Under the pieces are notes generated by a model. The model made no database searches, was not told where the DNA came from, and worked only from the letters and a program-made list of their open reading frames with translations. Below are positions 2-55,385 of a DNA stretch of 64,000 nt, one piece after another. This stretch comes from Macrostomum lignano (lineage: Eukaryota). How positions within the stretch are numbered: position 1 is the first letter of the stretch; every line of letters starts with the position of its first letter. Both the position numbers and the translations under genes were made by a program. The stretch lies in assembly GCA_002269645.1 (NCBI GenBank), contig NIVC01000636.1:186001-250000 (forward strand), given 5' to 3'.

Positions 2-535
<534 letters not shown>

Positions 536-1225
536 TGATGGGACAGGGCCGATGTGAGTCTGGGGTGATGGGACAGGGCCGATCGGAGTGTTGGTTTGGA
601 ACCCTCAGTGCCAGGGTGTGTGGTATTTTCTGCTCTTGTGTGAGATACCTTGAACACCCAAGTCTCTGATTCAGTGACATCGCGTGCACCCCAGAGCGTG
701 GCCCTGTGCCCTGTGTGGCAAGGCTGGCGCAAAATTAGTTATCAGAACGCGTCCGCTTCGCCATAAACGAAATTCCGGAGCCATATTTAAATATCGAATC
801 ATTGCAAGTCCAGCTGCAATTTCTAGCTGTGCTAATCCGAGTCCAAACACCCCCTGCCAGCGCCGCCCCCTCAAAACTTGAGATTTTATCGCTGCTGTAG
901 AACTGCTGATGCCCTCCTGGCCTTATCGAGTTATCGGCACCCGGGGCCGCGCCAGAACTGCTTCGCTCACGGCTGTGCAAGCTCGCATCGGCTGTCTGTT
1001 TATTCCTGCGCGGCCGGGGGTTGTGCGCAGTGCGCAGTCCTGCATAGACAGCCAGTTGCGAGCTGAAATAGTCCATGTATTTCTCACTTACTGGGCTTAT
1101 TTAAACATTTTCTGCGCCAAAAATTTGCGCTGTCTGAAACAGTTCTTAGATTCTTTTTAATAGTTTGTGTACCTATTAAAATTGCTAAATGGACTGCTAA
1201 ATGATCCCTAACCAAACTCCCAAGG

Positions 1226-1765
1226 TCATGGAGACCGCATCCCAGATCCCAGAGTCATGGAGACCGCATCCCAGATCCCAGAGTCATGAAGACCGCATCC
1301 CAGATCCCAGAGTCATGGAGACCGCATCCCAGATCCCAGAGTCATGGAGACCGCATCCCAGATCCCAGAGTCATGGAGACCGCATCCCAGATCCCAGAGT
1401 CATGGAGACCGCATCCCAGATCCCAGAGTCATGGAGACCGCATCCCAGATCCCAGAGTCATGAAGACCGCATCCCAGATCCCAGAGTCATGGAGACCGCA
1501 TCCCAGATCCCAGAGTCATGGAGACCGCATCCCAGATCCCAGAGTCATGGAGACCGCATCCCAGATCCCAGAGTCATGGAGACCGCATCCCAGATCCCAG
1601 AGTCATGAAGACCGCATCCCAGATCCCAGAGTCATGGAGACCGCATCCCAGATCCCAGAGTCATGGAGACCGCATCCCAGATCCCAGAGTCATGGAGACC
1701 GCATCCCAGATCCCAGAGTCATGGAGACCGCATCCCAGATCCCAGAGTCATGGAGACCGCATCTC
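1226..1765. repeat. 29-bp minisatellite (CATGGAGACCGCATCCCAGATCCCAGAGT)n, coronin intron
   Basis: Direct reading; copies at 1227 and 1256 are 29 bp apart. Confidence 0.97.
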
Positions 1766-1885
1766 AGATCTACAGTGAGTCTAGTTGCCAGATTGCTTGT
1801 CTCCGTGTGGCATGAGTCTGCCTGAGCAAGCAGAAGAAAAGAGCGCAAGTCAAGGCCAGGAAACTCCAAATCCGGCCGCTCGCAG

Positions 1886-2086
1886 GCCGCCTCCAAATCC
1901 GGCCAGTCCGCCTCCTCAGTGGCCAACGGACAGCAGGCGGCGGCCACCGAGAGCCCCCGACCGTCGCCTGAAGTGACGCAGCTACTGGACGACATGCGCA
2001 AGATGAAGATCATCATCAAGGGCCACGAGAGGCGCATCAAGTTTCTGGAGGAAAAGCTGAAGGGGGCCGAGGCCCCGGACAGCTAG
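1886..2086 (+). CDS. coro: Coronin alternative terminal exon A (coiled coil)
   Basis: Phase-0 acceptor ctcgcag ends at 1885. Reads AASKSGQ...EVTQLLDDMRKMKIIIKGHERRIKFLEEKLKGAEAPDS*, a typical coronin heptad tail. AATAAA at 2390-2395. Confidence 0.8.
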   Translation, partial: AASKSGQSASSVANGQQAAATESPRPSPEVTQLLDDMRKMKIIIKGHERRIKFLEEKLKGAEAPDS

Positions 2087-2409
2087 GAGGTCGGGGTCGC
2101 GGACCCTGACCCCCCTCGGCCCCCGCCCCGCCTCCATCTCACCCGCCCACCGCCAGCCAACCAGCCTGGGTAACATTGAGTCCAAGGTGTCCTGTTAATC
2201 TCAACCTTGGCCTTGCCGACACCGAGCCTTGTCTTGCTGCACGATGCATGCTTCCGTTTCTACTGCCAACTGCTGCCATGGCAACCACTTCCCCCAGTCA
2301 TTTTTGTCCCGATTGTGCGGATTCTGTGCTGGGGAGCTCCGAATGTGCATATGGAATCCTCAACTCGTTTGAAAAATTGACTATAACAAAATAAAGTTAA
2401 TAGCGGTTC

Positions 2410-3556
2410 GGTAGTGGGGATTATTGGGATTCGGTAGTGGGATTATCAGGATTCAGTAGTAAGAGATTATCGGGATTCGGTAGTGAGGAATATCGGGATT
2501 CGGTAGTGAGGATTATCAGGATTCGGTATTAGGGATTATCAAGAATCGGTAGTGGGGATTATCGGGATTCAGTAGTAAGAGATTATCGGGATTCGGTAGT
2601 GAGGAATATCGGGATTCGGTAGGGGGATTATTGGGTGTCGGTAGTGGGGATTATCAGGATTCGGTAGGGGGGTTCTTTGGTGTCGGTAGTGGGGATTATC
2701 AGGATTCGGTAGGGGGATTATTGGGTGTCGGTAGTGGGGATTATCAGGATTCGGTAGGGGGGTTATTGGGTGTCGGTAGTGGGGATTATCAGGATTCGGT
2801 AGGGGGGTTATTGGGTGTCGGTAGTGGGGATTTATCAGGATTCGGTAGGGGGATTATTGGGTGTCGGTAGTGGGGATTTATCAGGATTCGGTAGGGGGAT
2901 TATTGGGTGTCGGTAGTGGGGATTTATCAGGATTCGGTAAAGGGGTTATTGGGTGTCGGTAGTGGGGATTTATCAGGATTCGGTAGGGGGATTATTGGGT
3001 GTCGGTAGTGGGGATTATCAGGATTCGGTAGGGGATTATTGGGTGTCGGTAGTGGGGATTATCAGGATTCGGTAGGGGATTATTGGGTGTCGGTAGTGGG
3101 GATTATCAGGATTCGGTAGGGGGGTTCTTTGGTGTCGGTAGTGGGGATTATCAGGATTCGGTAGGGGATTATTGGGTGTCGGTAGTGGGGATTATCAGGA
3201 TTCGGTAGGGGGGTTATTGGGTGTCGGTAGTGGGGATTTATCAGGATTCGGTAGGGGGATTCTTTGGTGTCGGTAGTGGGGATTATCAGGATTCGGTAGG
3301 GGGTTATTTGGTGTCGGTAGTGGGGATTTATCAGGATTCGGTAGGGGGGTTCTTTGGTGTCGGTAGTGGGGATTATCAGGATTCGGTAGGGGGTTATTTG
3401 GTGTCGGTAGTGGGGATTTATCAGGATTCGGTAGGGGGGTTCTTTGGTGTCGGTAGTGGGGATTATCAGGATTCGGTAGGGGGATTATTTGGTGTCGGTA
3501 GTGGGGATTTATCGGGATTCGGTAGGGGGGTTCTTTGGTGTCGGTAGTGGGGATTA
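2410..3556. repeat. G-rich ~22/45-bp minisatellite (GGGATTATCAGGATTCGGTAG/GGGGATTATTGGGTGTCGGTAGT)
   Basis: Direct reading; lies between the two coronin terminal exons. Confidence 0.95.
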
Positions 3557-3846
3557 TAGCTCAGCAACGGCATGGCGTGTACTCCGCACCTGTAGTCCTG
3601 TACGGCAGATACATTTTTATACTAATTAGCTCTATCCTAGTGCGCGCCCCATACAATTATGCGTTGGTGGCTGTGCTCGCACATGCATAGCATGCAGCAC
3701 ACAGGATGACGGGCTATGCGCTGTCGGCATGTCTTTTCCATGTGCTCGTACTGCACCAAGCATGCTGGAGTTGCTGTGGGCCTGCCGTTCTCTGCGTCCC
3801 TGGCTGCGCAAGCACGGCTGACCGATCCCCCTTCCCTAATCCGCAG

Positions 3847-4065
3847 GTCCCCGCCAACCACCTGCTCGCCAACTCCAACTCGTCCGACTCTACCGCCGCT
3901 GCCACCGTTGCCGCCGACCCCGCCGACACCTCGGCGCTGGAATCCCGCGTCGCCGATCTGGAGGCCACCGTGCAAAACTTGACCAGCCTGGTGGAGTCCA
4001 TGCGCGACTCCATGGCGCAGCTCACCTCCGAGTGCGAGCAGCTGCGGGCCACCAGGGTGGGCTGA
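3847..4065 (+). CDS. coro: Coronin alternative terminal exon B (second coiled coil)
   Basis: ctaat branch-like motif and ccgcag acceptor ending at 3846, phase 0. Reads VPANHLL...SALESRVADLEATVQNLTSLVESMRDSMAQLTSECEQLRATRVG*, with heptad pattern and GC-rich exon-like codons. Confidence 0.7.
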   Translation, partial: VPANHLLANSNSSDSTAAATVAADPADTSALESRVADLEATVQNLTSLVESMRDSMAQLTSECEQLRATRVG

Positions 4066-4774
4066 GCTGGGACTCTGTTGCTGGGGCCTCCCCGCCTCTC
4101 CTTGACTCTATTGGTTGTCTGTCCCGCCACTTGCTACTCCATCCATGTCAAGCAGTGAGGATCCAATCCAATGAAACAGGGGATGGGGGGCTGTCTGAGC
4201 TCGGGCCGGTACACTGGGAATGGGGGGGGAGGGTTTCAAATTTCATCCGCGGGAATCACCGCTTCCCAGCTTATTTATTGAACTTATTTATACTCGTCCA
4301 CACGCTGCTGTCGTACTTGTGTTCCTACTGTCAGTAGCGAGTATCGGATTTGCGCTGTCTAACTGTTTTTTACACCAATAAGCCATCGAATTGTCTTTGC
4401 TTGCGTTTGCGTGCTTTTCTGTTGTACTGGCCTTCTTTTTTATCCCCGGTTGCCGCCGCCGCGTTGCCGGGGGCCTTGCGCGGCTTTTTGTTTTTTTCTC
4501 TCTACGCTTAGCGAGTTCCCAGTTTCTAGTTATCTAGCAAAGTAGCCTTGTCGGTTGGCAGCCCAGTATTAGAATTGTACACCCGCAGTAACTACACTAA
4601 CTGTTGCATACAAGCTGGCTTCTACCTGGCCTTCGCGTTATTGGCGCTGCACTTCTGCTCGGAGTCTTCCCAGTTATTTTGTTGGCCGAATTAATTATTG
4701 CTTTAGTTGTTGAGACAGCTTAAAATTATTGTCTTTTGACAGGTTCAATATTGATTAATTGTTGCTGCTGATTG

Positions 4775-5075: not shown

Positions 5076-6011
5076 CTAAAGGCATTCTATTGAGTAATTT
5101 TCTGATTGGCTGCTGTACTCACGCTCACTCAATACTGCATCTTGCATGCGGAGGTGCCGACTCGCTCCTCCGACCGTTGGTTTTTGTAATCCTAATTCCT
5201 CTGCTTTTGATCAACTTTGCAGTTGTTTTATTCAGTCTGCAATGCGAATGCAGCGGCAAATCTTGACTGCCTTATTGAAATTCAATCATCCATATTTCGT
5301 TTGTCTTTGTACTCCGCTTCCGCTTCCGGCTAGCAACCAATAGCTTATTTATAACTGCTAAATCCTGTTTTTTTAGTTTCCGTTTTGATATTTTCTTTAT
5401 TGGCTTTCTGTTGCCCCCCCGCCCGCCACGCCGAGTTGTCTGCTTCCACACTCCGCTGCTGAGGTTTTTGTTTTCAGTTTCTCCAGTTTCAGTTTGCCCC
5501 GGGATCTTCTGAGAACAATAAATGCTTACTAATAAAAAGTACATGGGTTTCGCCGCGTATTCACTGAATTAGCAATATTATGACTGACTCCCATTTCGGC
5601 ACTAAACTCCGACCTGCTCGTTGCCAGCTGCTTTTTATTCATTTCGAAAGGAAGTCACGGAAGGCCTGGACTTCTGTCCGGCCTGCCAAAGCCAGCCACC
5701 GCTGCCAGCTACTCTAATTGCTAAATTGATCTGCGAGCATTGATCTGCACTTCCCAGTTTCGTACTGTATTTAAACTCAGCCAGTGAAGCCAAAGCAGAA
5801 CGAAATATTAATAGTCTTGTAAGCTACGAATGACTTTTAATAACGGAGAGACTGTTTTGCTTTATTGTGCTTCTTCAGAGTGCAGTTTTTTACTTCGAGA
5901 CAATGAAAAAAGTACTCTCTGAACTTATCGGTGCTTAACAGTGGGTCAACTGCGATCAAGACTACTGCAAGTAGCACAGGGGAATTTGTCCCTGATTTGG
6001 TTCCCGGGTCA

Positions 6012-7523
6012 TCAACCGCCACGGGCCATCAGCCTGACGCTCTGCAGGGCCTTCCATGCGGCGGCGGCCAGCACCGCCAGCCAGGAGGTCGGCCGGAGAC
6101 CCGCGGCCGCGCCGCCCTCGCCATCGTCGGACGGTCGAAACTCGGCCGGCACGGCGCGGTGCAGCAGCAGCAGGAACTCGGCCCGCTGAAAGTGCAGCAC
6201 CCGCAACCGGCCGGCCGGGTCGGGCACCGGCTGTCCAACACGGTTGGCCACGCGCAGCAGGTCCAGGCCCGTCTGCACCGCCGGCACCCCCGGGCTGGTG
6301 GACAGCGTCAAGTGCGCCCGCTGGCCCGGTGCAGCCTCGCCTTCGCCGTTCGCCCACAGTTTGAGAGCGTCGGCGCCCAGAGCGGCGCGGTAGCCAAAAG
6401 TGCGGGGCGTCAGCAGCAGGGCGGTGGCGTTCAGGCCGAAGCCGCCGCCCACGGCTGCCTGCACGGCGGGCCGGGCCGCGTAGGCGGCGCAGGCGGGTAC
6501 GGCACCGTAATTGCAGTAGAAGCTGGTCACGTGCAGCTCCGCAGTCGGGTTCGCGTAGGCAAAGCGGCTCAGGTTGGCCACGGGAGTGTCTGCGGGACTG
6601 GCGGAGCTGGTGATCAGGAGGCTGCTGGGAGATGGGGAATGGGGATCGCTGCTGGGAGATAGGGAGCTAGTTTGGGGGGCTGCTGGGAGGTTGCTAGGAG
6701 ATGGGGAGGCTGCTACGAGATGGGGAGGCTGCTGGGAGATGGGGAGGTTGCTAGGAGATGGGGAGGCTGCTGGGAGATGGGGAGGTTGCTAGATGGGGAG
6801 CTAGTTTGCTACGAGATGGGGAGGCTGCTGGGAGATGGGGAGGTTGCTAGATGGGGAGCTAGTTTGCTACGAGATGGGGAGGCTGCTGGGAGATGGGGAG
6901 GCTGCTGGGAGATGAGGAGGCTGCTGGGAGATGGGGAGGCTGCTGGGAGATGAGGAGGCTGCTGGGAGATGAGGAGGCTGCTGGGAGATGGGGAGGCTGC
7001 TGGGAGATGGAGAGGTTGCTGAGAGATTGGAAGCTATTTTGCTAAGAGATAGGGAGCTAGTTTGCTAATAGATAGGGAGCTAGCTTGCTAATAGATGGGG
7101 GCTGTTGGGAGATGGGGAGCTAGTTTGCTAAGAGATAGGGAGCTAGTTTGCTAAGAGATAGGGAGGCTGCTGGGAGACGGGGAGGCTGCTGGGCGATGGG
7201 GAGCTATACAAGCAGGAAAAGGTGTCATTTGGTTGTTTCGATCAGCGGCTCCAAGCCGTCTTCAACAGTCCGGAGCAGCAGCTGGTTGCAGCAGTGTCTC
7301 ACCCAGACTGTGGTTGGTGAAATCGCAGTACAGCCGGCGCACCTCCTCGATGCCAAGCGCGGCCAGCAGGGTTTCCCTGGCCAGCTGCTTCAGGCCAGCC
7401 TCTGTGTTGTTGTCCGCGGGGAAGAAGCCAAAGTACAGCGGCAGCGGCCTGACGGTGGCGGGGCCGCTGGAGCCGCAGGCGGCCGCGATAGCCGCCACGA
7501 GCAAGAGGGCGGGCGCCGCTGGC
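6012..7523 (-). CDS. CNP: 2',3'-cyclic-nucleotide 3'-phosphodiesterase (CNPase)-like 2H phosphoesterase; exons 7523-7303 and 6589-6012; 5' start not resolved
   Basis: LPLYFGFF, LHVTSFYCNYG, ALLLTPRTFG, GQRAHLTL and VPAVQTGLDLL align by eye with vertebrate CNP (LPLYFGWF, LHCTTKFCDYG, ALFVTPKTTG, GSRAHITL, VEAVQTGLDLL). Both HxT motifs are intact. Phase-1 donor (GTGAGA, 7302) and acceptor (cccgcag, 6590) join in frame. Confidence 0.9.
6625..7200. repeat. ~20-bp minisatellite (GGAGGCTGCTGGGAGATGG)n filling the CNP-like intron
   Basis: Direct reading. Confidence 0.93.
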
Positions 7524-8609
7524 CTGCGTGAGTTCGAATCGTGGCATTCAGCCGAAGTAAGTGGCGAAGGATCACATCGCAATCTCACACCTACCTGGTC
7601 TGTAAAGCCAGGTAGGTGTCTTTGCAAAGCGTCTTTGTAAAATATAGAATTAATGCTACTAATAGGATACATTTGGAACGTTACAGACAGACCAGCAGAT
7701 CTAAGACTCTTAGCATAGGTGGATGGATAGAAGTAGCATAGGACGAAATGTCCAGTGCATTCCGGCTACTTGCGTGTTAAGTTAATGGCCTACTGACAAC
7801 TCTCACGCCACTCCTCTGTGCACAGACCTCAACAATGCAAGTTCCTTTGGCAGACAAAAGATGCGGACAGTGAGAATAGCAAGATTGATTGAGCAGTTGA
7901 GGAATTTCTGTGCCGCTCACCCAGCTCTCCAAATCCCGACAGTCTTCATCCAAGCTTAGCAGGCGGTCCTGTTGCAAACAGCTGAGCTGTGGCAAGTGGA
8001 GCTGCAGGGAGGCGCAACTTCTCTGCGCATGGAAATTGCAGCTTGCCGCGAGCGCCGGACTTGGCACCAAAGCTTTGGCGCCCGGCTTTTATTTTATCTA
8101 ATCAGCGGTGGAAAGGCCGCAGGTGGCTGAATTTGTGTATAGATCGCATTTACATGTACACAATGCTAACATCTAGCTTGCAAGAGAAGGCTAAAAATAG
8201 AGGGCCAGGACTTTAAGTCTTCACTTAGACTTGCATGTGCAACATGCAGCACGGCTGGCCAATGAGGTGGCCCGGTACCGCTGCAGATTCATATATTTAC
8301 CAATTGCTCCAGCACGAATGAGTATAATTATGATAACTTATGTACAACAAATAGCAGTGCTGATTGAGGTGTGCAATCGCGAGGAGCCGCAATGGGAATC
8401 TGCTGACTGGCGATCGCGGCAAAAAACAAAGCAAATCTGGCAGTTGTGAAACGGCTTGAAACAGCAAATCAAAAAGTAGGGAGAGGCGACATTGTGAAAG
8501 AAAACGGGGTGCTCCAAGCACTGGCTGTCACAGCTGCTAGCTAGAGAGCGAAATTTGCACTGTACATGATGCAGCAGTTAGAGCAGCTTTGGGCTGATCT
8601 GATTGGCTG

Positions 8610-8900
8610 CTAGACTAGACTGACTTGGATCTGATTGGCTGCTGAACTAGACTGACTCGGATCTGATTGGCTGCTAGACTATACTGACTGATCTGATTGG
8701 CTGCTAGACTATACTGACTGATCTGATTGGCTGCTAGACTATACTGACTCTGATCTGATTGGCTGCTAGACTATACTGACTCTGATCTGATTGGCTGCTA
8801 GACTATACTGACTCTGATCTGATTGGCTGCTAGACTATACTGACTCTGATCTGATTGGCTGCTAGACTATACTGACTCTGATCTGATTGGCTGCTAGACT
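8610..8900. repeat. 32-bp minisatellite (GATCTGATTGGCTGCTAGACTATACTGACTCT)n
   Basis: Copies at 8761 and 8793 are 32 bp apart. Confidence 0.95.
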
Positions 8901-8988
8901 GACTCAACTCGTATTGGCTTTAGAATTCTGAACAGAGTCCAACACCAATACGCGCAAGTACGCCGCCTGCAACCGGCCGGACCGCTGG

Positions 8989-11398
8989 CTAGTCCAGCTG
9001 CTGCTCCGATTGGTCGGCAGCGGTGGCGGCAGCGGCTGGCGACTCGGGGCCGGGCCAGAGCCAGATGTACTTGTGCACCATGTAGGAGCCGTCACTGTCT
9101 GTTGAATAGCCGAAGGCATCGCTGCGCAGAGCCCAGCCAGTGCGGGCCATGTGGTGGAACAGGGCCAGCTTTTCCGAGTTGCTCACCGACACGCTCTGGT
9201 AGGAGTCCGCCGCCGCCGCCGCAGCCCCTCCTGCCGGCTCCTCAGCCGGCCGCTGCAGTGGCAGCGCTCTGAGCGCCTCGGCGTGGCCGGAGATGACCAG
9301 GCCGCCGGACTTGAAGGCGCCGTTGTTCGACTGCCGGTTAGGCGGCGGCATGTAGAACCGGTAGAAGTAAGCCGTCTCCTCGAACTCCAGCACCTCCACC
9401 AGGTACTTGAATGGAATGTCGGCTGCCGACGGCGCCTGCGCCTTCGGCTGCTGCTGTTGCGACACGGGAGCGTCGCGTCGCTCCCTGCAGGCGGCCAGCA
9501 GGCCGGGCAGCCCGAAGAAATCCGCCTCGGCCTCCAGCAGGTCGAACTCATGCGGGGTGGCAATTTGTAGTGCTGGGAGCTGGGCGCGGAATTGCTGAGT
9601 GCCATTTGTCTGTCTGTGATTGCTGAGTGCCATTTGTCTCTCTGTGATTGCTGAGTGCAATTTGTCTCTCTGTGATTGCTGAGTACCATTTGTCTGTCTG
9701 TGATTGCTGAGTGCAATTTGTCTCTCTGTGATTGCTGAGTGCCATTTGTCTCTCTGTGATTGCTGAGTGCCATTTGTCCATCTGTGATTGCTGAGTGCCA
9801 TTTGTCTGTCTGTGATTGCTGAGTGCCATTTGTCTCTCTGTGATTGCTCTTTGTCTAGATCTGTGATTACTGAGTGCCATTTGTCTAGATCTGTGATTGA
9901 TGAGTGCAATTTGTCTCTCTGTGATTGCTGAGTGCCATTTGTCTCTCTGTGATTGCTGAGTGCAATTTGTCTCTCTGTGATTGCTGAGTGCCATTTGTCT
10001 CTCTGTGATTGCTGAGTGCAATTTGTCTAGATCTGTGATTGCTGAGTGCCATTTGTCTAGATCTGTGATTGCTGAGTGCAATTTGTGTAGATCTGTGATT
10101 GCTGAGTGCAATTTGTCTCTCTGTGATTGCTGAGTGCAATTTGTCTCTCTGTGATTGCTGAGTGCCATTTGTCTAGATATGTGATTGCTGAGTGCCATTT
10201 GTCTAGATCTGTGATTGCTGAGTGCCATTTGTCTAGATCTGTGATTGCTGAGTGCCATTTGTCTAGATCTGTGATTGCTGAGTGCAATTTGTGTAGATCT
10301 GTGATTGCTGAGTGCCATTTGTCTGTCTGTGATTGCTGAGTGCCATTTGTCTCTCTGTGATTGCTCTTTGTCTAGATCTGCGATTACTGAGTGCCATTTG
10401 TCTAGATCTGTGATTGATGAGTGCAATTTGTCTCTCTGTGATTGCTGAGTGCCATTTGTCTCTCTGTGATTGCTGAGTGCAATTTGTCTCTCTGTGATTG
10501 CTGAGTGCCATTTGTCTGTCTGTGATTGCTGAGTGCCATTTGTCTCTCTGTGATTGCTGAGTGCAATTTGTCTCTCTGTGATTGCTGAGTGCAATTTGTC
10601 TAGATCTGTGATTGATGAGTGCAATTTGTCTCTCTGTGATTGATGAGTGCAATTTGTCTCTCTGTGATTGCTGAGTGCCATTTGTCTCTCTGTGATTGCT
10701 GAGTGCAATTTGTCTCTCTGTGATTGCTGAGTGCAATTTGTCTAGATCTGTGATTGATGAGTGCAATTTGTCTCTCTGTGATTGATGAGTGCAATTTGTC
10801 TCTCTGTGATTGCTGAGTGCCATTTGTCTAGATCTGTGATTGATGAGTGCCATTTGTCTGTCTGTGATTGCTGAGTGCCATTTGTCTCTCTGTGATTGCT
10901 GAGTGCCATTTGTCTCTCTGTGATTGCTGAGTGCCATTTGTCTCTCTGTGATTGCTGAGTGCCATTTGTCTCTCTGTGATTGCTGAGTGCAATTTGTCTA
11001 GATCTGTGATTGATGAGTGCAATTTGTCTCTCTGTGATTGCTGAGTGCCTTTTTGTCTAGATCTGTGATTGCTGAGTGCCATTTGTCTAGATCTGTGATT
11101 GCTGAGTGCCATTTGTCTATCTGTGATAAGTACTACCAACAACCGCAGTCCAGCCTACCTGGAACCCATCTGGCAGGCACAGGCGGCTGCAGCGCAGGTA
11201 GTTGAGGACGTGCCTGAACAGCCTGCCGTCCCGGTCAATGAACACGTGGCCGGCCGGGTCGCGCAGCACAGATGGCGTGAAGCTGCCGCCAAACATGACA
11301 GCCAGCATGGAGCCGGGGAACTTGCACAGCGTGGCTCTGGTGGTGGTGTGCACAATGCCGCCGACATTCAGCACCACCGCCTGCTCCGAGGCTTCCAT
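8989..11398 (-). CDS. KCTD-family BTB/POZ (T1-type) protein; exons 11398-11159 and about 9546-8989
   Basis: VVLNVGGIVHTTTRATL...GSMLAVMFGG...FIDRDGRLFRHVLNYLR...LPDGFQ joins (E)FDLLEAEADFFGLPGL, the standard KCTD BTB signature. Donor GTAGGC at 11158; acceptor atypical (see findings). Confidence 0.88.
9595..11130. repeat. 28-bp minisatellite (CTGTGATTGCTGAGTGCCATTTGTCTCT)n filling the KCTD intron
   Basis: Period 28 (9601/9629). Confidence 0.97.
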
Positions 11399-13479
11399 TC
11401 TGCGGTGGCACTACTAGGCCTCTGCTGGCGCGGAGCACAGACCAAATGTTGAGCTGGCGGCAGGCATGAAGGATTCCAACATTAATTTTCTATTTTCAGC
11501 TCTCCATCTCTGCATGCTGAGTTCTCCTATACTTTGCTAGGCTTGAAAATTGTTTGTGTGGAGCAATACTGGTGAATTGAGACTGCTGGGTGCCTCCAAT
11601 ACCAATTCCCAATACCAATTGGGAAAGTAAAAGGAGGAATTAAGGGATTGGCAATTTTGCAAAGGCCAGCAACAGAATAATTAGGTGCTCATTTATTTTA
11701 GAACAAAGCATAGAAACACCCATAATTGCCATAGGCTTACACAGTAGGCATGTATAAAATAGAGGTTGGTCATCTGCCAATTTGTAAGCATATGTTTTAA
11801 ATTTACAATTGATGCTTTTTTTAAAAGCACAAAACAGTATTTTATTTTTGTTGGTCATCCACAATGAAAACAATATTTATTGGTACAATTAAATCCTAGT
11901 GCTTGCATTTGGATTTGCTAAATTTTGATTAAAATGTAATAGATAAGATATAATAAATTATGAAAATTTCATGAGTATAGTAAATTATAATTGTGATTCT
12001 AATTGTAACAACTAATATAACTATAAATTAATTATAAAAGTGAACACAATTATTTCATATAAAAACTACAAACATAACTTTAGCTTTACATAAAGCAAAA
12101 ACAAAATTAAATTTAATACATTTTTATTATTTGATATAAGGGATATCCCAAAAGTTCTTAGAATGTTCAATCCTTAAAAACTTGATAAATTTTTGTTTAT
12201 ATGTTTATGTTTGTTTAACTTTTCCAAATTTACGAGGGGTATCCAAAAAGTAGTTGGAATTTTCCATATAGTTCATAGTTAATTTAAAGTATAGAAAATT
12301 ATTCTAAAGCAATAGCTGCATCCTTTTTTTACATAGGCCCTAATTTAAATCTATATATTTGGCAATTTGCCAAAATGGTCTAAAATTGTTGCAGAAATGA
12401 CTATTAGCATTGTCTTGTTGCAAAGTGTCTATTACCAATATGTCTTAGGGCCTATTGCAAAAGTGACTAATAATAGCCTGATAGGCAATAGCCCTTTGAA
12501 AAGAACTTGTCTTACAATCTTTAGCCAAAAACAAACATTTGGTATAAAATAAGCAAGTGCTAGCATTACTAGATATGATTAGCAACTTAAATAGGCCTAA
12601 TAGTAGGCCCCCTAATTAGGCCTAGATTAGGAACTCCAAAGAAAAGTTTAGGAATTTAGAAATTAATATTTGAGGGGTGTCTAAAAATGAAAAATTAGTA
12701 GGAATTTTCTATGTAGTTCATAGCTAGAATCAGATACATAAATGGCATTGACAGTTCATGAAAGTGGCTTTATATATATATGCAATACATTTTGAATTAT
12801 GTTAATATCTACTGGCATTCAAAATTTATGAGCAATTTAGTGCAGTTCTCCAAGGAATGACTTCTAGAAAATGTATTTGGACAGGTTTTAAGCTTCACTT
12901 TGTACTTTTGATGCATTATGTTTATACAATGATGCCTATAGACAATAGACATGGTAACGTATGTCTATAGGCTAAACACCAAAACTATGAATACATGCAG
13001 CATCATCATAGCCAGGCGATGCTAAGCTTTACATGGACAGCACAGCTCAGCCAGATATCTTGTCAACTTGAGCTTCTGAAGCAACCAAGTTTGTGCCAAC
13101 ATGTTGGATATCCACTCAAAAGAGAATGCCACCAAGCTATTTTTACTCTATAGAGTCTTGGACTCAATGGATTAGATATTTTAAATAAACTATAGCATAT
13201 CCATGGACAGCATGCAGTGAGCAAGAGCACAGTTTACTGGTGGATTGAGGAATTTGAGGCTGCTGGTTGAATGAATGTGGCGGCATTGATGCCATCATAA
13301 ACCCAAAAAATCACAACTCCAAAAGCACTTCCTATCATAAACCCAAAATATCACAAACCCAAAATATCATAACTCCAAAAAATAAAATAGCAATGAGAAG
13401 TAAAAGAAAGGAGATTGCAAGCATTTTCATTAGAACGACATGTTTCGCCTAACTTTAGGCATCATTGGGCAGACACTGC

Positions 13480-20400: not shown

Positions 20401-23400
20401 TGGGACCTGCACCTCCTCATCCCCAGCCGCATTGAGCCCGTCTAGGAGGAAAAACAATAGAATATGACGTTTCTATTATCCAACTTTGCATAGGATCCTG
20501 ATGGCTTAGAGGTATAATTGAATTGTAGCCTAGAGAGTCGCAAGAAAAGCAAGGATCACGATTCAAATTAAGATAGGAGAATTGAAACTCTGCTGTAAAC
20601 AACTATGGCTTTTCTGTGTAGAGAGAGTGAAGATTTCCTGCGGTAAGGCAATTTTTCTCGGAAAGCCAGACTTTAAAAAGTAATTATCTTCTGATGTTAC
20701 GTGTACACAGCTAGTATCATGTTATATACCATCCTTCTGCTCAAGTACATGTATGCGGTTGTGGTCGACATTGATACAATTTTGTCTTTCCGATTTACGG
20801 CATCATAGATACCTTAGCGAGCTTAGCTGAAAATTACAGTAGTGTAATTCCGTTCATTTTGTACACTATTTAATTTGAAAGTAACGATTTTATCGATTAT
20901 AACAAAGTAGTTATGCACTATACTAATAGGCCACGAATTTATTGACTATTTAACATAAAAGCGAAGATTTTTGTTTTATATTACATTTAAAAGGTGCAAA
21001 GCCACTATTTTTTAGTTCTTCAAGGATTTTCGCTTTTCGTTTTTGCGATTTAATTTTTGAACTTGACTTTAATTAATTACATTGATCGAGCTAGCTCACT
21101 GCCACTGCATGATTGATCAAGTGGTGATCGATCGTCATTTTTAAGAACCTCAGTTTCTTGCTCTTTCTAGTTATAAAAACGAAGTTAAATAGATCAAAGT
21201 GTTATTGTATGTAATTTTGTGTTCTTAGGACGTTACTTTTTCACTTATTGGAATACTAATTTATACTTAGAATTATGACCTTTGAGTGAAACTATAAAAG
21301 AAAAATTCAGTTGTCTTTACACGGTTTTTAAGCATTTCAGTAGACCTAGTAGCTAAGAGATAGTCTAATTTGTTTATAAAAACTTTGTTTATAAAAACGG
21401 ACAAGTAACTGTCCGTTTTTATAAACAATCAAATAGTTTAATTATGATTGATTTTCAGTATCCAAGAATAGAGAAATGAAATTATCTAATTCTAATAATA
21501 ATTAGATAACAGAATAGAGAAAATGTCATTTAAGGCCATAGTTGAAAAAAGTGTAAGACAGCTGCCATTTTTTCTCTTTAAAAGAGACTTAGATAATTGT
21601 TAGGAGACTAGGCAATGTTGTGTAATAACATTTATGATCTTTTTATACTCTTTAGTTTAGTTGATTGAATGATTATAACTCCTTTTTATGCCATTTTTAA
21701 ACATTTTATAAATTTAAGGTGCCTGTAGATAAATAAAGGTAAATATCAACATGAAGTATTATTTGAGTTGCCGATGCATTTCGTCCATTTGCATTAGGAC
21801 ATCGTCAGGGTCTTTTTATTGAGAAACAATTTGAACGAATATTCAGTATATATAGATAGTTGAGAGTAACAAGAGTAGTTGAATTGAGTTTTTAATTGAT
21901 GGTTTAAAACTTGTACATAGTAATCAATTTTTGATACAGTATTGGTTGGGTAAAGTGCATATCAGTTTCAAGCCAGTCCGGTCATTGACAAATCAGCTAA
22001 AAAATTCTGAGTTGACGGCTAGCCCCACCCATCGCAAGTTGGTTATTTAACGTGGGCTGTTTGGTCTTAATGTACAGGGCTTCTAATAGGCAGAGCATGT
22101 GATCTCTATTACAAAAATCAATAGCCTTTATCATTTCGTGTGGTTCAGCCTCACAACAAGAATTGCAGGTTAGCAGGTGTTCGTTAATAGCAGAGTTTTT
22201 TAGCCAGTGCTCTCTGACCCTCGTGTATAAGTGTCGTTTAGTTTTTCCTATGTAGGACGTCACTGTTCCATTTCTTCGGAGATTTGAGCGCTACGCCACT
22301 GCCCTTGGCAAGTGCCAGGTGGACAGTTGGTTCCTTCAGCAATGTATTGAACTACAGGTTGCACCCAAGTTTGTCCAGTTCAAGAAACCGAACACACCTG
22401 TTTTTCGTGATCTATCCAACGTTCACAATGCATTGATTCAACAAGAACTTCGAGCTAACCAACGGAAGACTCATCAACTACGGAATCGAGTCCAAGAACT
22501 TAAGTCAAACTTAAGAAATCAGCTGGGTTTGATCTCCTATGCAGTCCTATGGCATCTAGTGAGCAAGTCAACGCAAGAAAAACTTCGAGCGGACCGCCTG
22601 AGACTCGGAAAGAAGCTTCGCAACCTCTGGACCGAGCAGAAGCATCAGACCCATGGAGCCAATACCATCACCAACCTGTCTCGTCACCAACTCACGGTCA
22701 CCGAGCTCAACTGTTTGCAACATGGTCTGCGCAACCCGACGCTACCAAAACGCATCAACAAGCTTAAAATCGCTGCTGAAATTGAATCTGGCCTGAGTAA
22801 GTGCCTAAAAACTGACAATTTGCGAGTTGACGGCGCTGTTCCACCCGATAAGCTTAAACACCGTATCATTGCTGAATTTGAAAAGTTTATCTGTAGAGCT
22901 CAAGGATACGTTAACAAGAAAAGCAATAGGCTTATGCACCAGACTATGAACGGTCTCAAGAACAATGACAACATCAAGATCGTTGGTTACGATAAAGGCT
23001 ATGGCGTTGCTGTCTTAGACAGTAATGATTATTTCGAGAAACTGGAGAAAGTGACCAGGACAAACTCAAGTTTCAATGCCTTGGTACCGCCGATAAAGTC
23101 ACTATGACCCACCCGATTCTGAAAAATGAAAGATCTCTTCAGAATTTTTTGAGAACTTATGTCAAGCCGCATGTGAGCCCTGAGATTTTTAAGGTGATTG
23201 TCCCAAATGGTAGCCAACCTGGACAACTGTATGGTCTGTGCAAAGTTCATAAGGATGGTCATCCTTTAAGACCAATTGTTTCGATGATCAACACTTCAGA
23301 GTATGAGCTAGCCAAATTCCTTGACAATTTAATTAAACCTGTTATTCCTTCTGAGCACTGTGTGGGATCCAATAAACAGTTTATTGAGAGCCTCAGCAAT

Positions 23401-26400
23401 ACCACGATTAATCAAACTGACAGGCTTTATATCTGTGAGGTTGTTTCACTGTTCACCAACATCCCTCTCGATTTCACCATTGAGCTGGCTGCTGATCTTG
23501 TGTATGAAAAAACCGATCCACCTCCTTTCTCCAAAGCCACTTTTAAGAAGATGCTCAAATTCGCCACCTCCGGCATCTTTCTTTTTCGGGACAAATATTA
23601 CAGACAGATTGATGGGTGTGCCATGGGCAGCCCTCTCGCCCCAACCCTCGCTAATTTATGCATGGCCCACTGGGAGAAGGACTGGATGGCCCTCCCTTGT
23701 GCGCCTCACTTCTACAAACGCTACGTCGATGACACGTTTGCGATCTTTGAGGACGAAGCTAAGAAGGACGAGTTTTTTAAGTTAATCAATTCTACTTATG
23801 AGAATATCAAATTCACGGCGGAGGGGGAGGCAGAAGACTTCCTTTCTTAGACATTGACGTTGACGCCACCGATGAAACTATTTCGACCAGCGTGTATAGG
23901 AAACCTAGCTTTACCGGGCTTATGCTTAGGTTTGACGCCTTGTGCCCTAGACAATGGAAAACCGGATTGATTCGTTGCTTTCTTCACCGGGCTTTTTCCA
24001 CTTGCAGCTCTTGGAGACTTTTCCACAACGAAGTTGAAATCCTCACCAATCTGCTCAGCTACAATGGCTATCCTAAGAACTTTGTGATGAAAATTGTCAA
24101 CTCTTTTCTCAATGACAAACTGACTGAACCTAATCGGATGAAAGTTCGTGATTCCACCTCTGAATGTCCCTTGATCACTTTGCCTTACTTTGGTGTTTGT
24201 TCTATAGAGTTTAAAAAGAAGTTAGAAAAGCTGCTCCGTAAAGACTTAAACACTCAAATCCGTGTTGTGTTTCGCACCGAAAAGATTGCTAAGTTTGTCT
24301 GCAAGTTGAAATCCAGTGTTCCACGTCCTCTCGCGGCTGGTGTCGTGTATAAATTTGTTTGCTCTGAGGACCAGAGCATCTCCTACATAGGAAAAACTAA
24401 ACGACACTTATACACGAGGGTCAGAGAGCACTGGCTAAAAAACTCTGCTATTAACGAACACCTGCTAACCTGCAATTCTTGTTGTGAGGCTGAACCACAC
24501 GAAATGATAAAGGCTATTGATTTTTGTAATAGAGATCACATGCTCTGCCTATTAGAAGCCCTGTACATTAAGACCAAACAGCCCACGTTAAATAACCAAC
24601 TTGCGATGGGTGGGGCTAGCCGTCAACTCAGAATTTTTTAGCTGATTTGTCAATGACCGGACTGGCTTGAAACTGATATGCACTTTACCCAACCAATACT
24701 GTATCAAAAATTGATTACTATGTACAAGTTTTAAACCATCAATTAAAAACTCAATTCAACTACTCTTGTTACTCTCAACTATCTATATATACTGAATATT
24801 CGTTCAAATTGTTTCTCAATAAAAAGACCCTGACGATGTCCTAATGCAAATGGACGAAATGCATCGGCAACTCAAATAATACTTCATGTTGATATTTACC
24901 TTTATTTATCTACTCTTCATCAAGCGAGCCACTTTACCTGATTTTAAGGTGCCTGTGATGTTTAAAATATGTAAAAATTAGTTTTATTTTCCTATTTTTA
25001 TCCTATTTCAAATTTCTAAATCATTTCTTTAGTTTGGTTGTGCCTTATATCTTTGTTTAGTCTTTCCTTTATTACCTTATAAGTTCTTGGTTGTATACTG
25101 AATCTTTCTTTTTCTTGTTTGTACTAAATGTAGTTTTTCAGGCTTTGTATTTTTTATGAATTAAATTTTAATTAGTTATAGATAAAAAATCAAGTCATTT
25201 ATTTAGTTTTTTATTTAATATGTTTCTATATCTATAACTAGAGTTGGACACTATAGTGTCCAAATAAAAATGCTAGTAGAAGTTAAAATTAATATAATAA
25301 ACTGACAGTTTCTGCATTTGTATATATTATTTCTTAAAACATGCATAATTTTTTTCTAGTCTATCATATAGAATTAACTGTATAAATATATTAAACATTG
25401 GTTTTAAACCAAAGAATTAAATGATATCAAATCATATTGAATAGAAATCACACAGATAAATAGCTAATATACTAAATAAATTTATTCTAAAAATCAATAT
25501 TAATATAATAAGAAAAGAAAAAAGTATAGTTGCTTTTGTGGCATTGTAATAATATTATTATTTAATATCTATTTAGTATTAAGGACTTATCTAAGGAATA
25601 TCAAAGGTTAAATTTACTTTTCCCCTTGTAAAAGATCACATATTTATTTTAAAAAATACTTAGCAAAGGCATAATAAATATATGCTAAAATTTTCCTATA
25701 GCCACCAAAGTGTCTAAGAGTCTTGCATCTTCTATCTAGGACCTAGGACTCATAACTCTCATGACAGTTTAAACAATTTTATTATATGTATATCAAAGCA
25801 TGCTTATTAATCAAATTCTATTGATGCAACAATGTTTTGAAAGCAACTTTTTAAATAGTAATTACAAGTTTTGGTTTTTGAATAAGTTTAGCCAATGACA
25901 AAATGGCATTCTAATGCATGCAAATTGGACAATGAAGTGTAGCAGCTGCTGCATTGACAAACCATCAAATGAATATCCACTGGAGCCACTGACTGATGCA
26001 TGTCACCATCCGCTGCTGCAGATCTGCATTCGGGTTTGAATTTTGACTAAATGAAAATGATCACACATTTAAACTTGCATGCCTGTACGAGTATCTAAAT
26101 ATGAACTGTTGGTGCACAATTTCTATAGTGCTGCTTGAAGTCTGTGGACTCGGAAGGTGTCTGCCCATACAGCCAGTGCGATGGCGAGGTGGAGCCGGAC
26201 TCAGAGAGCGCCGCCATCTACAGGCTGCAACTGGAGAGCGTTGTCTATGACTACAGGGACAAGGAGGTGTCCGGTAAGCTGATGCAGTGTGGATGCTGAA
26301 GGACTCCGCAATGAGGTTGGAGTTTCGTTAAATACCACTGGAGTCTCAGACCAAAGTATCAGGGATGGGATATTGATGCTGTGGTATCAGGGATGGGATA

Positions 26401-29400
26401 TTGATGCTGTGGTATCAGGGATGGGATACTGATGCTGAGGTATCAGAGATGGGATACTGATGCTGTGGTATCAGGGATGGGATATTGATGCTGTGGTATC
26501 AGGGATGGGATACTGATGCTGTGGTATCAGGGATGGGATACTGATGCTGGAGTATCAGGGATGGGATATTGATGCTGAGGTATCAGAGATGGGATACTGA
26601 TGCTGTGGTATCAGGGATGGGATACTGATGCTGGAGTATCAGTGATGGGATATTGATGCTGAGGTATCAGAGATGGGATACTGATGCTGTGGTATCAGGG
26701 ATGGGATATTGATGCTGTGGTATCAGGGATGGGATACTGATGCTGTGGTATCAGGGATGGGATACTGATGCTGGAGTATCAGGGATGGGATATTGATGCT
26801 GAGGTATCAGTGATGGGATATTAATGCTGAGGTATCAAGGATGGGATATTGATGCTGAGGTATCAGTGATGGGATATTAATGCTGAGGTATCAAGGATGG
26901 GATATTGATGCTGAGGTATCAAGGATGGGATACTGATGCTGTGGTATCAGGGATGGGATACTGATGCTGGAGTATCAGGGATGGGATATTGATGCTGGAG
27001 TATCAGGGATGGGATATTGATGCTGAGGTATCAGTGATAGGATATTGATGCTGAGGTATCAGAGATGGGATACTGATGCTGTGGTATCAGGGATGGGATA
27101 TTGATGCTGTGGTATCAGGGATGGGATACTGATGCTGTGGTATCAGGGATGGGATACTGATGCTGGAGTATCAGGGATGGGATATTGATGCTGAGGTATC
27201 AGAGATGGGATACTGATGCTGTGGTATCAGGGATGGGATACTGATGCTGGAGTATCAGTGATGGGATATTGATGCTGAGGTATCAGAGATGGGATACTGA
27301 TGCTGTGGTATCAGGGATGGGATATTGATGCTGTGGTATCAGGGATGGGATACTGATGCTGTGGTATCAGGGATGGGATACTGATGCTGGAGTATCAGGG
27401 ATGGGATATTGATGCTGAGGTATCAGTGATGGGATATTAATGCTGAGGTATCAAGGATGGGATATTGATGCTGAGGTATCAGTGATGGGATATTAATGCT
27501 GAGGTATCAAGGATGGGATATTGATGCTGAGGTATCAAGGATGGGATACTGATGCTGTGGTATCAGGGATGGGATACTGATGCTGGAGTATCAGGGATGG
27601 GATATTGATGCTGTGGTATCAGGGATGGGATATTGATGCTGAGGTATCAGTGATGGGATATTGATGCTGAGGTATCAGAGATGGGATACTGATGCTGTGG
27701 TATCAGGGATGGGATACTGATGCTGTGGTATCAGGGATGGGATACTGATGCTGGAGTATCAGGGATGGGATATTGATGCTGAGGTATCAGTGATGGGATA
27801 TTAATGCTGAGGTATCAAGGATGGGATATTGATGCTGAGGTATCAGTGATGGGATATTAATGCTGAGGTATCAAGGATGGGATATTGATGCTGAGGTATC
27901 AAGGATGGGATACTGATGCTGTGGTATCAGGGATGGGATACTGATGCTGGAGTATCAGAGATGGGATATTGATGCTGAGGTATCAGGGATGGGATACTGA
28001 TGCTGTGGTATCAGGGATGGGATACTGATGCTGGAGTATCAGAGATGGGATATTGATGCTGTGGTATCAGGGATGGGATATTGATGCTGTGGTATCAGGG
28101 ATGGGATACTGATGCTGTGGTATCAGGGATGGGATACTGATGCTGGAGTATCAGGGATGGGATATTGATGCTGGAGTATCAGGGATGGGATATTGATGCT
28201 GAGGTATCAGTGATAGGATATTGATGCTGAGGTATCAGAGATGGGATACTGATGCTGTGGTATCAGGGATGGGATATTGATGCTGTGGTATCAGGGATGG
28301 GATACTGATGCTGTGGTATCAGGGATGGGATACTGATGCTGGAGTATCAGGGATGGGATACTGATGCTGGAGTATCAGGGATGGGATATTGATGCTGAGG
28401 TATCAGAGATGGGATACTGATGCTGTGGTATCAGGGATGGGATACTGATGCTGGAGTATCAGTGATGGGATATTGATGCTGAGGTATCAGAGATGGGATA
28501 CTGATGCTGTGGTATCAGGGATGGGATATTGATGCTGTGGTATCAGGGATGGGATACTGATGCTGTGGTATCAGGGATGGGATACTGATGCTGGAGTATC
28601 AGGGATGGGATATTGATGCTGAGGTATCAGTGATGGGATATTAATGCTGAGGTATCAAGGATGGGATATTGATGCTGAGGTATCAGTGATGGGATATTAA
28701 TGCTGAGGTATCAAGGATGGGATATTGATGCTGAGGTATCAAGGATGGGATACTGATGCTGTGGTATCAGGGATGGGATACTGATGCTGGAGTATCAGGG
28801 ATGGGATATTGATGCTGTGGTATCAGGGATGGGATATTGATGCTGAGGTATCAGTGATGGGATATTGATGCTGAGGTATCAGAGATGGGATACTGATGCT
28901 GTGGTATCAGGGATGGGATACTGATGCTGTGGTATCAGGGATGGGATACTGATGCTGGAGTATCAGGGATGGGATATTGATGCTGAGGTATCAGTGATGG
29001 GATATTAATGCTGAGGTATCAAGGATGGGATATTGATGCTGAGGTATCAGTGATGGGATATTAATGCTGAGGTATCAAGGATGGGATATTGATGCTGAGG
29101 TATCAAGGATGGGATACTGATGCTGTGGTATCAGGGATGGGATACTGATGCTGGAGTATCAGAGATGGGATATTGATGCTGAGGTATCAGGGATGGGATA
29201 CTGATGCTGTGGTATCAGGGATGGGATACTGATGCTGGAGTATCAGAGATGGGATATTGATGCTGAGGTATCAGGGATGGGATATTGATGCTGAGGTATC
29301 AGGGATAGGATATTGATGCTGAGGTATCAGGGATGGGATATTGATGCTGAGGTATCAGGGATGGGATTTTGATGCTGAGGTATCAAGGATGGGATATTGA

Positions 29401-54564: not shown

Positions 54565-55385
54565 CCGTGGCGCCAGCACCAGGGGCACCAGCACCAGGGG
54601 CGCCAGCACCAGGGGCACCAGCACCAGGGGCGCCAGCACCAGGGGCGCCAGCACCAGGGGCGCCAGCACCAGGGGCGCCAGCACCAGGGGCACCAGCACC
54701 AGGGGCGCCAGCACCAGGGGCACCAGCACCAGGGGCGCCAGCACCAGGGGCGCCAGCACCAGGGGCGCCAGCACCAGGGGCGCCAGCACCAGGGGCGCCA
54801 GCACCAGGGGCACCAGCACCAGGGGCACCAGCACCAGGGGCGCCAGCACCAGGGGCACCAGCACCAGGGGCGCCAGCACCAGGGGCGCCAGCACCAGGGG
54901 CGCCAGCACCAGGGGCGCCAGCACCAGGGGCGCCAGCACCAGGGGCGCCAGCACCAGGGGCGCCAGCACCAGGGGCGCCAGCACCAGGGGCACCAGCACC
55001 AGGGGCGCCAGCACCAGGGGCGCCAGCACCAGGGGCGCCAGCACCAGGGGCGCCAGCACCAGGGGCGCCAGCACCAGGGGCGCCAGCACCAGGGGCGCCA
55101 GCACCAGGGGCGCCAGCACCAGGGGCGCCAGCACCAGGGGCGCCAGCACCAGGGGTGCCAGCACCAGGGCGCCAGCACCAGGGGCGCCAGCACCAGGGGC
55201 GCCAGCACCAGGGGCGCCAGCACCAGGGGCGCCAGCACCAGGGGCGCCAGCACCAGGGGCGCCAGCACCAGGGGCGCCAGCACCAGGGGCGCCAGCACCA
55301 GGGGCGCCAGCACCAGGGGCGCCAGCACCAGGGGCGCCAGCACCAGGGGCGCCAGCACCAGGGGCGCCAGCACCAGGGGCGCCAG
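54565..55385. repeat. 15-bp GC-rich minisatellite (GCACCAGGGGCGCCA)n
   Basis: Direct reading; stop-free in all six frames. Confidence 0.97.

Follow-up and report, generated by a model that had tools for sequence, protein, structure and literature searches.

A flatworm CNPase with a signal-peptide-like start and a GPI-like tail in place of kinase domain and CAAX box

The subject of this analysis is a CNPase gene of the flatworm Macrostomum lignano, found on the minus strand of a 64,000-nucleotide (nt) stretch of contig NIVC01000636.1, the whole of which we call the window. The gene is intact, with three exons and a coding sequence of 828 nt for 275 residues. With a probability of about 0.6, we read its product from its sequence features as an exported CNPase-type 2H phosphodiesterase that is held at the membrane, most likely by a glycosylphosphatidylinositol (GPI) anchor, and that has neither the polynucleotide kinase (PNK) domain nor the CAAX box of better known relatives. 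An earlier note on this DNA had proposed such a protein from four features, the LPLYFG start of the domain, its two HxT motifs, a hydrophobic stretch before it and a tail after it, and all four are present, on the minus strand.

In the literature searched, vertebrate CNPase appears as an enzyme of the cytosol that associates with membranes and whose PNK-like domain is inactive, and its invertebrate and fungal relatives appear as intracellular tRNA-healing enzymes (PMC4643303, PMC5434554). An exported CNPase domain would put this chemistry outside the cell, where secreted ribonucleases (RNases) and tissue injury yield 2',3'-cyclic nucleotides.

The catalytic domain

The CNPase-type 2H domain occupies residues 37-236 and starts with LPLYFGFF (window 7444 downward). 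It matches the Pfam profile PF05881 at an E-value of 3.8e-24, with 85.9 bits against a cut-off of 25. The match covers residues 29-192 of a partial 267-residue model, which are residues 37-200 of the final protein, and ends at position 169 of the 236 in the profile, so the remainder of the domain was tested by structure. The CNPase catalytic domains of rat, mouse and human in the PDB, together with goldfish RICH, are matched at E-values of about 5e-20, and by these scores the domain match is far beyond chance. The structural model, made by AlphaFold2 on 51 homologs, has a mean predicted local distance difference test score (pLDDT) of 86, with the core residues 37-238 above 90. Foldseek aligned it over 207-228 columns to about 50 CNPase structures (E 1e-16 to 1e-11), with target-normalised template modelling scores (TM-scores) of 0.72-0.86 across the whole domain of 205-220 residues. 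The complete bilobed 2H fold is seen in the model, including the C-terminal strands that lie beyond the Pfam match.

The active site was mapped by aligning the protein residue by residue to the PDB structures and taking residue roles from the mutational analysis in PMC4643303. The window protein has a counterpart for each catalytic or substrate-binding residue that was mapped from the mouse enzyme. Besides the two HxT motifs (Table 1), mouse Y168, P225, W289 and V321 correspond to Y40, P98, W162 and V188, mouse F235 corresponds to Y108, where the aromatic character is kept, and mouse R307 has its counterpart in R174, just before the second motif. In the alignment of the 51 homologs H103, T105 and H176 are invariant and T178 is nearly so. 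Between W162 and H176 the loop has six residues fewer than its mammalian equivalent, for which reason mouse P296 was left unmapped. The window protein belongs to the CNPase family PF05881 by profile, motifs, fold and binding residues alike, and to judge from these residues its CNPase domain is apparently complete and active. The proposal of a CNPase-type 2H catalytic domain in an invertebrate is therefore upheld by the profile, the PDB matches and the fold, which all agree.

Gene model and absence of the kinase domain

Two minus-strand open reading frames (ORFs), at 6012-6581 and 7262-7672, hold the sequences on which the proposal was based. Splicing joins them into one continuous frame, with a GT donor (G/GTGAGA) after 7303 and an AG acceptor (cccgcag) before 6589. 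The exons are GC-rich and the introns filled with repeats. A reading of the long ORFs as a single exon was rejected, as it leaves no ATG in frame with the hydrophobic stretch, and the ATG at 7547 was rejected as a start, being in another frame than that stretch. We judged the UniProt model A0A1I8GFC0 (P0003) to be an artefact; it crosses the ATG region in a different frame and has no start codon. The start-codon problem is resolved by a second genomic copy of the locus, L001, in which an upstream 29-nt exon, ATGAAGACTGTCGGGATTTGGAGAGCTGG followed by GTGAGC, is annotated at 10001-10029. Comparison with this copy located exon 1 in the window, where an identical exon lies at 7949-7921 and an in-frame TAA lies three codons 5' of its ATG.

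The earlier note had assigned positions 6012-7523 to the gene and had left the 5' exon and its ATG to be fixed. Its span equals exon 2 through exon 3 exactly and omits the 29-nt ATG exon, 397 nt further upstream, which is the one found through L001. As a wholly coding stretch the span does not hold, since 7302-6590 is a tandem-repeat intron.

Table 1. Features of the CNPase gene, in positions of the window
Feature	Positions	Strand	Description
Exon 1	7921..7949	-	29 nt, 9 2/3 codons with the ATG, MKTVGIWRAG; charged start of the putative signal peptide; donor GTGAGC
Intron 1	7524..7920	-	397 nt, GT...AG
Exon 2	7303..7523	-	Remainder of the putative signal peptide, with the h-region AGPAAPALLLVAAIAAA before C-G-S-S-G; the catalytic domain starts here at LPLYFGFF and has its first 47 residues in this exon
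Signal-peptide part of exon 2	7472..7523	-	Residues 10-27; likely cleavage after AAC or ACG
Intron 2	6590..7302	-	713 nt, GT...AG, 19- and 23-nt tandem repeats
Exon 3	6012..6589	-	Remainder of the catalytic domain, linker, hydrophobic tail, stop codon TGA at 6014-6012
First catalytic motif	6522..6533	-	HVTS, residues 103-106; H103-V-T105-S aligns with mouse CNPase H230-x-T232 (H103 with H230, T105 with T232)
Cysteine pair	6489..6515	-	C109...C117 (C-x7-C), just past the first HxT motif; candidate disulfide
Second catalytic motif	6303..6314	-	HLTL, residues 176-179; H176-L-T178-L aligns with mouse H309-x-T311 (H176 with H309, T178 with T311)
Linker	6087..6131	-	SDDGEGGAAAGLRPT, residues 237-251; small residues, disorder predicted; possible omega region for GPI attachment
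C-terminal helix	6021..6086	-	SWLAVLAAAAWKALQSVRLMAR, residues 252-273; weakly hydrophobic; AlphaFold helix, pLDDT 63-77
Polyadenylation-like signal	5861..5866	-	AATAAA, about 150 nt past the stop codon

No P-loop motif and no P-loop or PNK-like domain occurs in the 275-residue protein, whose catalytic domain begins at residue 37, right after the putative signal peptide. There is also no CAAX box, the protein ending in ...LMARGG. That the kinase domain is absent is not the artefact of a missed exon, because a stop precedes the ATG and the upstream neighbour on the same strand is a separate gene of BTB_2 (KCTD-like) type, as seen in L001 and in a third copy, L003.

The ortholog P0002 (252 residues, 58-62% identity), which is the only close relative outside M. 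lignano, agrees with this. It comes from L002, an intron-less contig of 1022 nt from the public sequencing run SRR30276812, whose 100-nt leader has a TAA just ahead of the ATG and whose 3' end carries AATAAA motifs. The contig is best read as an mRNA, because the M. lignano gene has two introns inside the corresponding coding region. P0002 encodes MHSVLLLLVAIATVSRLGSCQA followed directly by SLPLYFG... and ends in ...GLRPTAWLTLLATAAWRLGKLGLSHIAG, which is the same three-part layout as in the window protein. An upstream PNK exon in the transcript would have spoken against the proposed architecture, and none is present in this contig, a result that applies to the ortholog and not to the copy in the window. 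The in-frame TAA, the stop in the ortholog and the separate BTB_2 gene thus bear out the proposed lack of a PNK domain, as the C-terminus ...ARGG does for the lack of a CAAX box. With both absent, the window protein stands outside the architectures of vertebrate CNP and of the lancelet PNK/cyclic phosphodiesterase (PNK/CPDase).

Entry into the secretory pathway

Directly upstream of the catalytic domain lies the hydrophobic stretch PAAPALLLVAAIAAACGSSG. Together with exon 1 the N-terminus reads MKTVGIWR-AGPAAPALLLVAAIAAA-CGSSG, that is, a basic start (K2, R8), a hydrophobic core and then the small residues A-A-C-G-S. Its best 12-residue window has a summed apparent insertion free energy, dG(app), of -2.0, and all 19-residue windows are at +3.6 or above. 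A core of only about 12 residues is the pattern of a cleavable signal rather than of a membrane anchor, and the N-terminus has the look of a signal peptide that is cleaved. The values are similar in six other members of the family that start in this way, the exceptions among them being P0020 with a weaker 12-residue core (+0.02) and P0145 and P0150 with slightly negative 19-residue windows. AlphaFold places a helix at residues 13-26, with low confidence.

The composition of the mature domain points the same way. Where shuffling leads one to expect 0.83 N-X-S/T sites, it has four (P = 0.005), and the ortholog has three of them (N80, N89 and N137) in identical alignment positions. In the family as a whole, the density of such sites in the domain is 1.67 per 100 residues in the 7 signal-peptide forms and 0.41 in 81 others (Mann-Whitney p = 2.6e-5). 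A C-x7-C pair such as C109 and C117 is found in 5 of the 7 signal-peptide forms and in 2 of the 81 others (Fisher p = 1e-5), and in the window protein it would fit a disulfide formed in an oxidising compartment. Entry into the secretory pathway, which the earlier note had inferred from the hydrophobic stretch, is supported by these indirect tests: the 12-residue core with its small residues, the enriched and conserved N-X-S/T sites and the cysteine pair.

It could also be supposed that the N-terminal stretch is a mitochondrial or other organelle membrane anchor and that the domain works inside the cell. Vertebrate CNPase has an isoform, CNP2, that mitochondria import, and attachment to the cytosolic side of membranes recurs in the family, through the CAAX box in vertebrates and possibly through N-myristoylation where proteins start with MG. 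The low AlphaFold confidence for the N-terminal helix could be taken in the same sense. We nevertheless hold an intracellular enzyme to be very improbable, as the stretch is an uninterrupted run of A, L, V and I without interspersed basic residues, followed by small residues, and this is not an amphipathic presequence. Nor would an intracellular location explain N-glycosylation sites that are fourfold enriched and conserved, or an extra cysteine pair that is enriched in the signal-peptide forms.

The C-terminal tail

Past the last strand (...VPAEFRP) the C-terminal sequence is SDDGEGGAAAGLRPT-SWLAVLAAAAWKAL. The small residues and the hydrophobic tail that had been proposed here are found as a linker and then a helix, both in the sequence and in the model, where linker residues 241-251 have pLDDT below 50. 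The tail had been taken to end at ...WKAL; it runs on as QSVRLMARGG, which includes two arginines. Three elements of a GPI signal can be observed, namely a linker of small residues (GGAAAG), a spacer (LRPTS) and a terminal hydrophobic helix, and the relatives from Lineus and Daphnia have clearer and more hydrophobic tails of a similar type. On these grounds the tail would fit a GPI attachment signal, and we rank GPI anchoring first among the readings of the tail with modest confidence.

There are a number of observations that weigh against this reading and against the larger one of which it is a part. The hydrophobic run of the tail is only 10-13 residues long. It has a lysine inside it and is followed by the ten residues QSVRLMARGG with their two arginines, and a basic stretch at the end is unusual for GPI signals. 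The tails of both Macrostomum-type proteins keep the motif GLRPTxWLxxLAxAAW, when a signal that is cleaved off usually conserves its physical character only. Among the relatives with a signal peptide, the Tubulanus protein and P0149 have no tail at all, so anchoring is not general to the signal-peptide forms. The dG(app) values for both ends of the protein come from approximate hydrophobicity scales summed without position weights, which makes the numbers rough. Finally, the junction of exon 1 and exon 2 in the window gene is based on the annotation of L001 rather than on transcripts of its own.

Some of these points would be expected if the protein were a soluble enzyme of the secretory or endolysosomal lumen, for example in the gut lumen, the lysosome or a gland secretion. 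It could there finish a digestion of RNA started by nucleases of the RNase T2 type, and the tail helix would be a pro-piece, a sorting signal or a helix that binds membranes peripherally. The two signal-peptide relatives that end at the domain agree with this, as does a Macrostomum tail that is weakly hydrophobic, bears lysine and arginine and has a conserved sequence; its helix has a modest, though non-zero, hydrophobic moment (0.26 in the window protein, 0.38 in the ortholog). Still, GPI signals classically show this order of a small-residue linker and a terminal hydrophobic helix, and the layout recurs in Lineus and Daphnia with more hydrophobic tails. We therefore regard a soluble enzyme as unlikely, while giving it some weight.

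Less probable again, and in our view distinctly so, is a type I membrane protein in which the signal is cleaved, the domain lies outside, the helix spans the membrane and the basic end KALQSVRLMARGG is cytosolic. Basic residues do follow the hydrophobic run in Macrostomum, in Lineus (RYRVL) and in Daphnia (TKQKL), which fits the positive-inside rule, and AlphaFold draws one continuous helix of 22 residues. Against a membrane span stands the shortness of the uninterrupted hydrophobic run. The best 19-residue window of the helix, moreover, sums to a dG(app) of +6.4 (+6.1 in the ortholog), a long way from values that would allow insertion into a membrane, and for this reason we consider the helix too polar for a stable transmembrane span.

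Under the GPI-anchored reading that we prefer, the 275-residue precursor would consist of a cleavable signal peptide, a competent CNPase-type 2H domain and a flexible linker with a weakly hydrophobic helix. It would be translocated into the endoplasmic reticulum, where it could be N-glycosylated at up to four sites, three of them conserved, and where the cysteine pair may be oxidised to a disulfide. The protein would then be exported and held on the outer face of the membrane by its C-terminal signal, most likely through exchange of that signal for a GPI anchor. Outside the cell it would convert 2',3'-cyclic nucleotides, or the 2',3'-cyclic phosphate ends of RNA fragments that arise from secreted RNases or cell damage, to 2'-phosphates. 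Such hydrolysis could be the first step of extracellular nucleoside salvage or of clearing these nucleotides.

Genomic copies and selection

The best match in the protein search, PAA67301.1 ('hypothetical protein BOX15_Mlig000784g2'), is 96% identical and represents the second copy. Its contig NIVC01001494.1 (L001) is colinear with the window at about 91-93% DNA identity, and with an identity no higher than this it is a second genomic copy and not the window itself. Intron 2, a minisatellite, measures 713 nt in the window and 408 nt in L001 (10624-11031). The third copy, L003 (NIVC01000637.1, 3001-3539), agrees with L001 at 98% identity. A run of C in L003 is one base short, the frame shifts after ...LYFGFFP, and the annotated protein has 53 residues; L003 could be either a young pseudogene or a homopolymer error of long reads. 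The flanks are alike in all three copies, with the BTB_2 (KCTD-like) gene upstream on the same strand (window about 8600-11400, minus strand) and, downstream and in opposite orientation, a WD40 gene of coronin-like type (DUF1899; window about 500-4100, plus strand).

A genome with at least three copies of a locus, one of them frameshifted in annotation, raises the question of whether the window gene is a decaying duplicate without function. The ratio of nonsynonymous to synonymous substitution rates (dN/dS) between the two intact copies, 0.47, could be read in that way, and it is based on only 19 differences. Against the diverged ortholog, which is itself seen as a transcript contig, dN/dS is 0.235 (dS 1.46, near saturation). 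The ORF, the splice sites and the catalytic residues are intact both in the window copy and in L001, and the one-base frameshift of L003, which falls in a run of C, may stem from an error in the long reads. We find decay hardly credible on this evidence; the sequence comparisons indicate an intact gene that is selectively maintained under constraint.

Distribution across animals

An exhaustive search of 1.84 billion representative proteins returned 132 relatives at E of 0.001 or less. P0002 was matched at 7e-86 and the next protein only at 1e-18. Word-indexed searches with an alignment of the signal-peptide forms and with the Lineus protein brought almost no further relatives. We sorted the matches by simple sequence features, and by names where these were present, into three layouts. 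The first is that of vertebrate CNP and RICH, with a CAAX end. The second, to which most invertebrate members belong, has a P-loop kinase domain and then a CNPase domain ending in ...FSGYY, often with an MG... start; it is found in tapeworms, flukes, tardigrades, an amphipod crustacean, echinoderms and a hemichordate. The third is a small set with a signal-peptide-like N-terminus directly before the CNPase domain. Beside the Macrostomum pair it includes Tubulanus polymorphus XP_074663185.1, without a tail, Lineus longissimus XP_064620447.1, with the tail ...NGSTRFGLSWDMISVILLVTLTLRYRVL, Daphnia pulex XP_046463776.1, with the tail ...DSGTHQLAASFSLLCLCCAFAILTKQKL (best window +0.6), and two further sequences, P0149 and P0150.

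The earlier note could not say whether such forms were already described. They do exist beyond this locus, as automatic gene predictions in two nemerteans and Daphnia that bear the name 'CNP-like'. In the literature searched, where the broad searches covered the top-ranked 12-15 of thousands of matches, no description was found of an exported CNPase form from a flatworm, a nemertean, Daphnia or invertebrates generally. Several of the papers listed, among them PMC4147251 and PMC7246452, bear the term '2',3'-cAMP-adenosine pathway'. In a rough neighbour-joining tree the signal-peptide forms were monophyletic in 0 of 300 bootstraps. The sister of the Macrostomum pair was one unnamed protein in 52% of bootstraps and the PNK-CNPases of parasitic flatworms in 25%. 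A common origin of the Macrostomum and the nemertean and Daphnia forms is thus unproven, as they never grouped in the 300 trees.

Other members of the family have features of their own. Many invertebrate PNK and CNPase proteins start with MG(Q/A/C)... (P0034, P0035, P0036, P0048, P0064, P0074, P0118, P0130 and others), which suggests N-myristoylation, and membrane attachment by varied means (myristoyl, prenyl, signal peptide plus tail) seems to be a recurring theme of the CNPase family. In P0080 (Sparganum proliferum BHF78040.1, 919 residues) repeats resembling fibronectin type III were seen by eye before the PNK-like and CNPase domains, and this could be either a fusion of gene models or another unusual architecture.

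That the signal-peptide layout turns up in four animal lineages suggests that its function is real and has been overlooked, and that it is no accident of annotation. Going further, protostomes might hold an undescribed class of extracellular, lipid-anchored CNPase-type enzymes, true ecto-2',3'-cyclic-nucleotide 3'-phosphodiesterases. We put this forward as a tentative idea that is rather more likely to be wrong than right. Such a class would have arisen by loss of the kinase domain and gain of a signal peptide and a GPI-type tail, perhaps more than once.

If it were true, the consequences would reach beyond one gene. The 2',3'-cAMP-adenosine pathway of mammals runs extracellularly and involves CNPase, and invertebrates would possess a surface enzyme dedicated to the extracellular route, familiar from mammalian pharmacology, that leads from 2',3'-cAMP through 2'-AMP to adenosine. 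The cytosolic, membrane-attached enzyme of vertebrate myelin would then be one of several membrane solutions within the CNPase family. Sixty years of work on CNPase have concerned a myelin protein attached to membranes in the cytosol, and there is still debate over its physiological substrate. With an exported form, M. lignano would offer a small, single-domain and probably glycosylated enzyme, and as RNA interference is routine in this animal, the purpose of a CNPase could be tested there.

Other elements in the window

On the plus strand at 22319-24641 there are three consecutive ORFs. The second has a reverse transcriptase match (RVT_1, E 8e-8) and the third a match to a GIY-YIG endonuclease (E 4e-7), a pair that is typical of Penelope-like retroelements. 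Minisatellites with units of 11-45 nt and up to 112 copies crowd the window, for example at 26356-29497, 9591-11127, 1218-1770, 2408-3557 and 54569-55387. The array of a 28-mer at 26356-29497 accounts for the strong GC skew there, and the array of a 15-mer at 54.5-55.4 kb has ORFs in all six frames and a spurious keratin-like Pfam match. Rfam and tRNA scans of the window gave no matches.

Comparison with known systems

One point of reference is the catalytic domain of vertebrate myelin CNP (PDB 2xmi, 1woj, 2ilx). The two have in common the Pfam family, the fold of the whole domain and both HxT motifs, as well as the tyrosine at the ribose, the sandwich of an aromatic residue and a valine around the base, the arginine before the second histidine and the helix VQTGLDLL. 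At about 28% identity, the window protein differs in lacking the N-terminal PNK-like P-loop domain and the CAAX prenylation box, and the loop before its second HxT motif is six residues shorter than in vertebrate CNP. Unlike vertebrate CNP it has a putative signal peptide, four N-X-S/T sites, the C-x7-C pair and a hydrophobic tail, and its predicted location is on the opposite side of the membrane.

The regeneration-induced CNPase homologs of fish (RICH; goldfish G-RICH, PDB 2i3e) show a comparable similarity in the CNPase domain (E 5e-20), and some of them, like the window protein, have no recognisable P-loop domain. They differ from it in that they are cytosolic proteins with a long acidic N-terminal region and a CAAX box and without a signal peptide. 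The lancelet PNK/CPDase and the healing domains of yeast Trl1 (PMC5434554) are CNPase-related 2H cyclic phosphodiesterases of an invertebrate and a fungus. They are intracellular RNA-repair enzymes with an active kinase domain, whereas the window protein has no kinase and has apparent secretory features. The lancelet layout, a P-loop kinase followed by a CNPase domain, is that of most invertebrate homologs we found.

Similar in architecture are the predicted 'CNP-like' proteins of Lineus, Tubulanus and Daphnia, in which, as in the window protein, a signal-peptide-like start is followed by the CNPase domain without PNK and many N-X-S/T sites are present. The Lineus and Daphnia proteins also share the stretch of small residues and the hydrophobic tail, and the nemertean ones the C-x7-C pair. 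All three are only 25-29% identical to the window protein and carry a long cysteine-rich insert before the second HxT motif, which Macrostomum does not have.

For exported or lipid-anchored hydrolysis of nucleotides there are precedents in the 2',3'-cyclic nucleotide phosphodiesterases of CpdB type in the bacterial periplasm or on the bacterial surface and in the GPI-anchored CD73. Their folds, metallophosphoesterase and 5'-nucleotidase, are unrelated to that of CNPase, and CpdB yields 3'-nucleotides where CNPase-type enzymes yield 2'-nucleotides. In its proposed function, by analogy, the window protein resembles these exported enzymes most.

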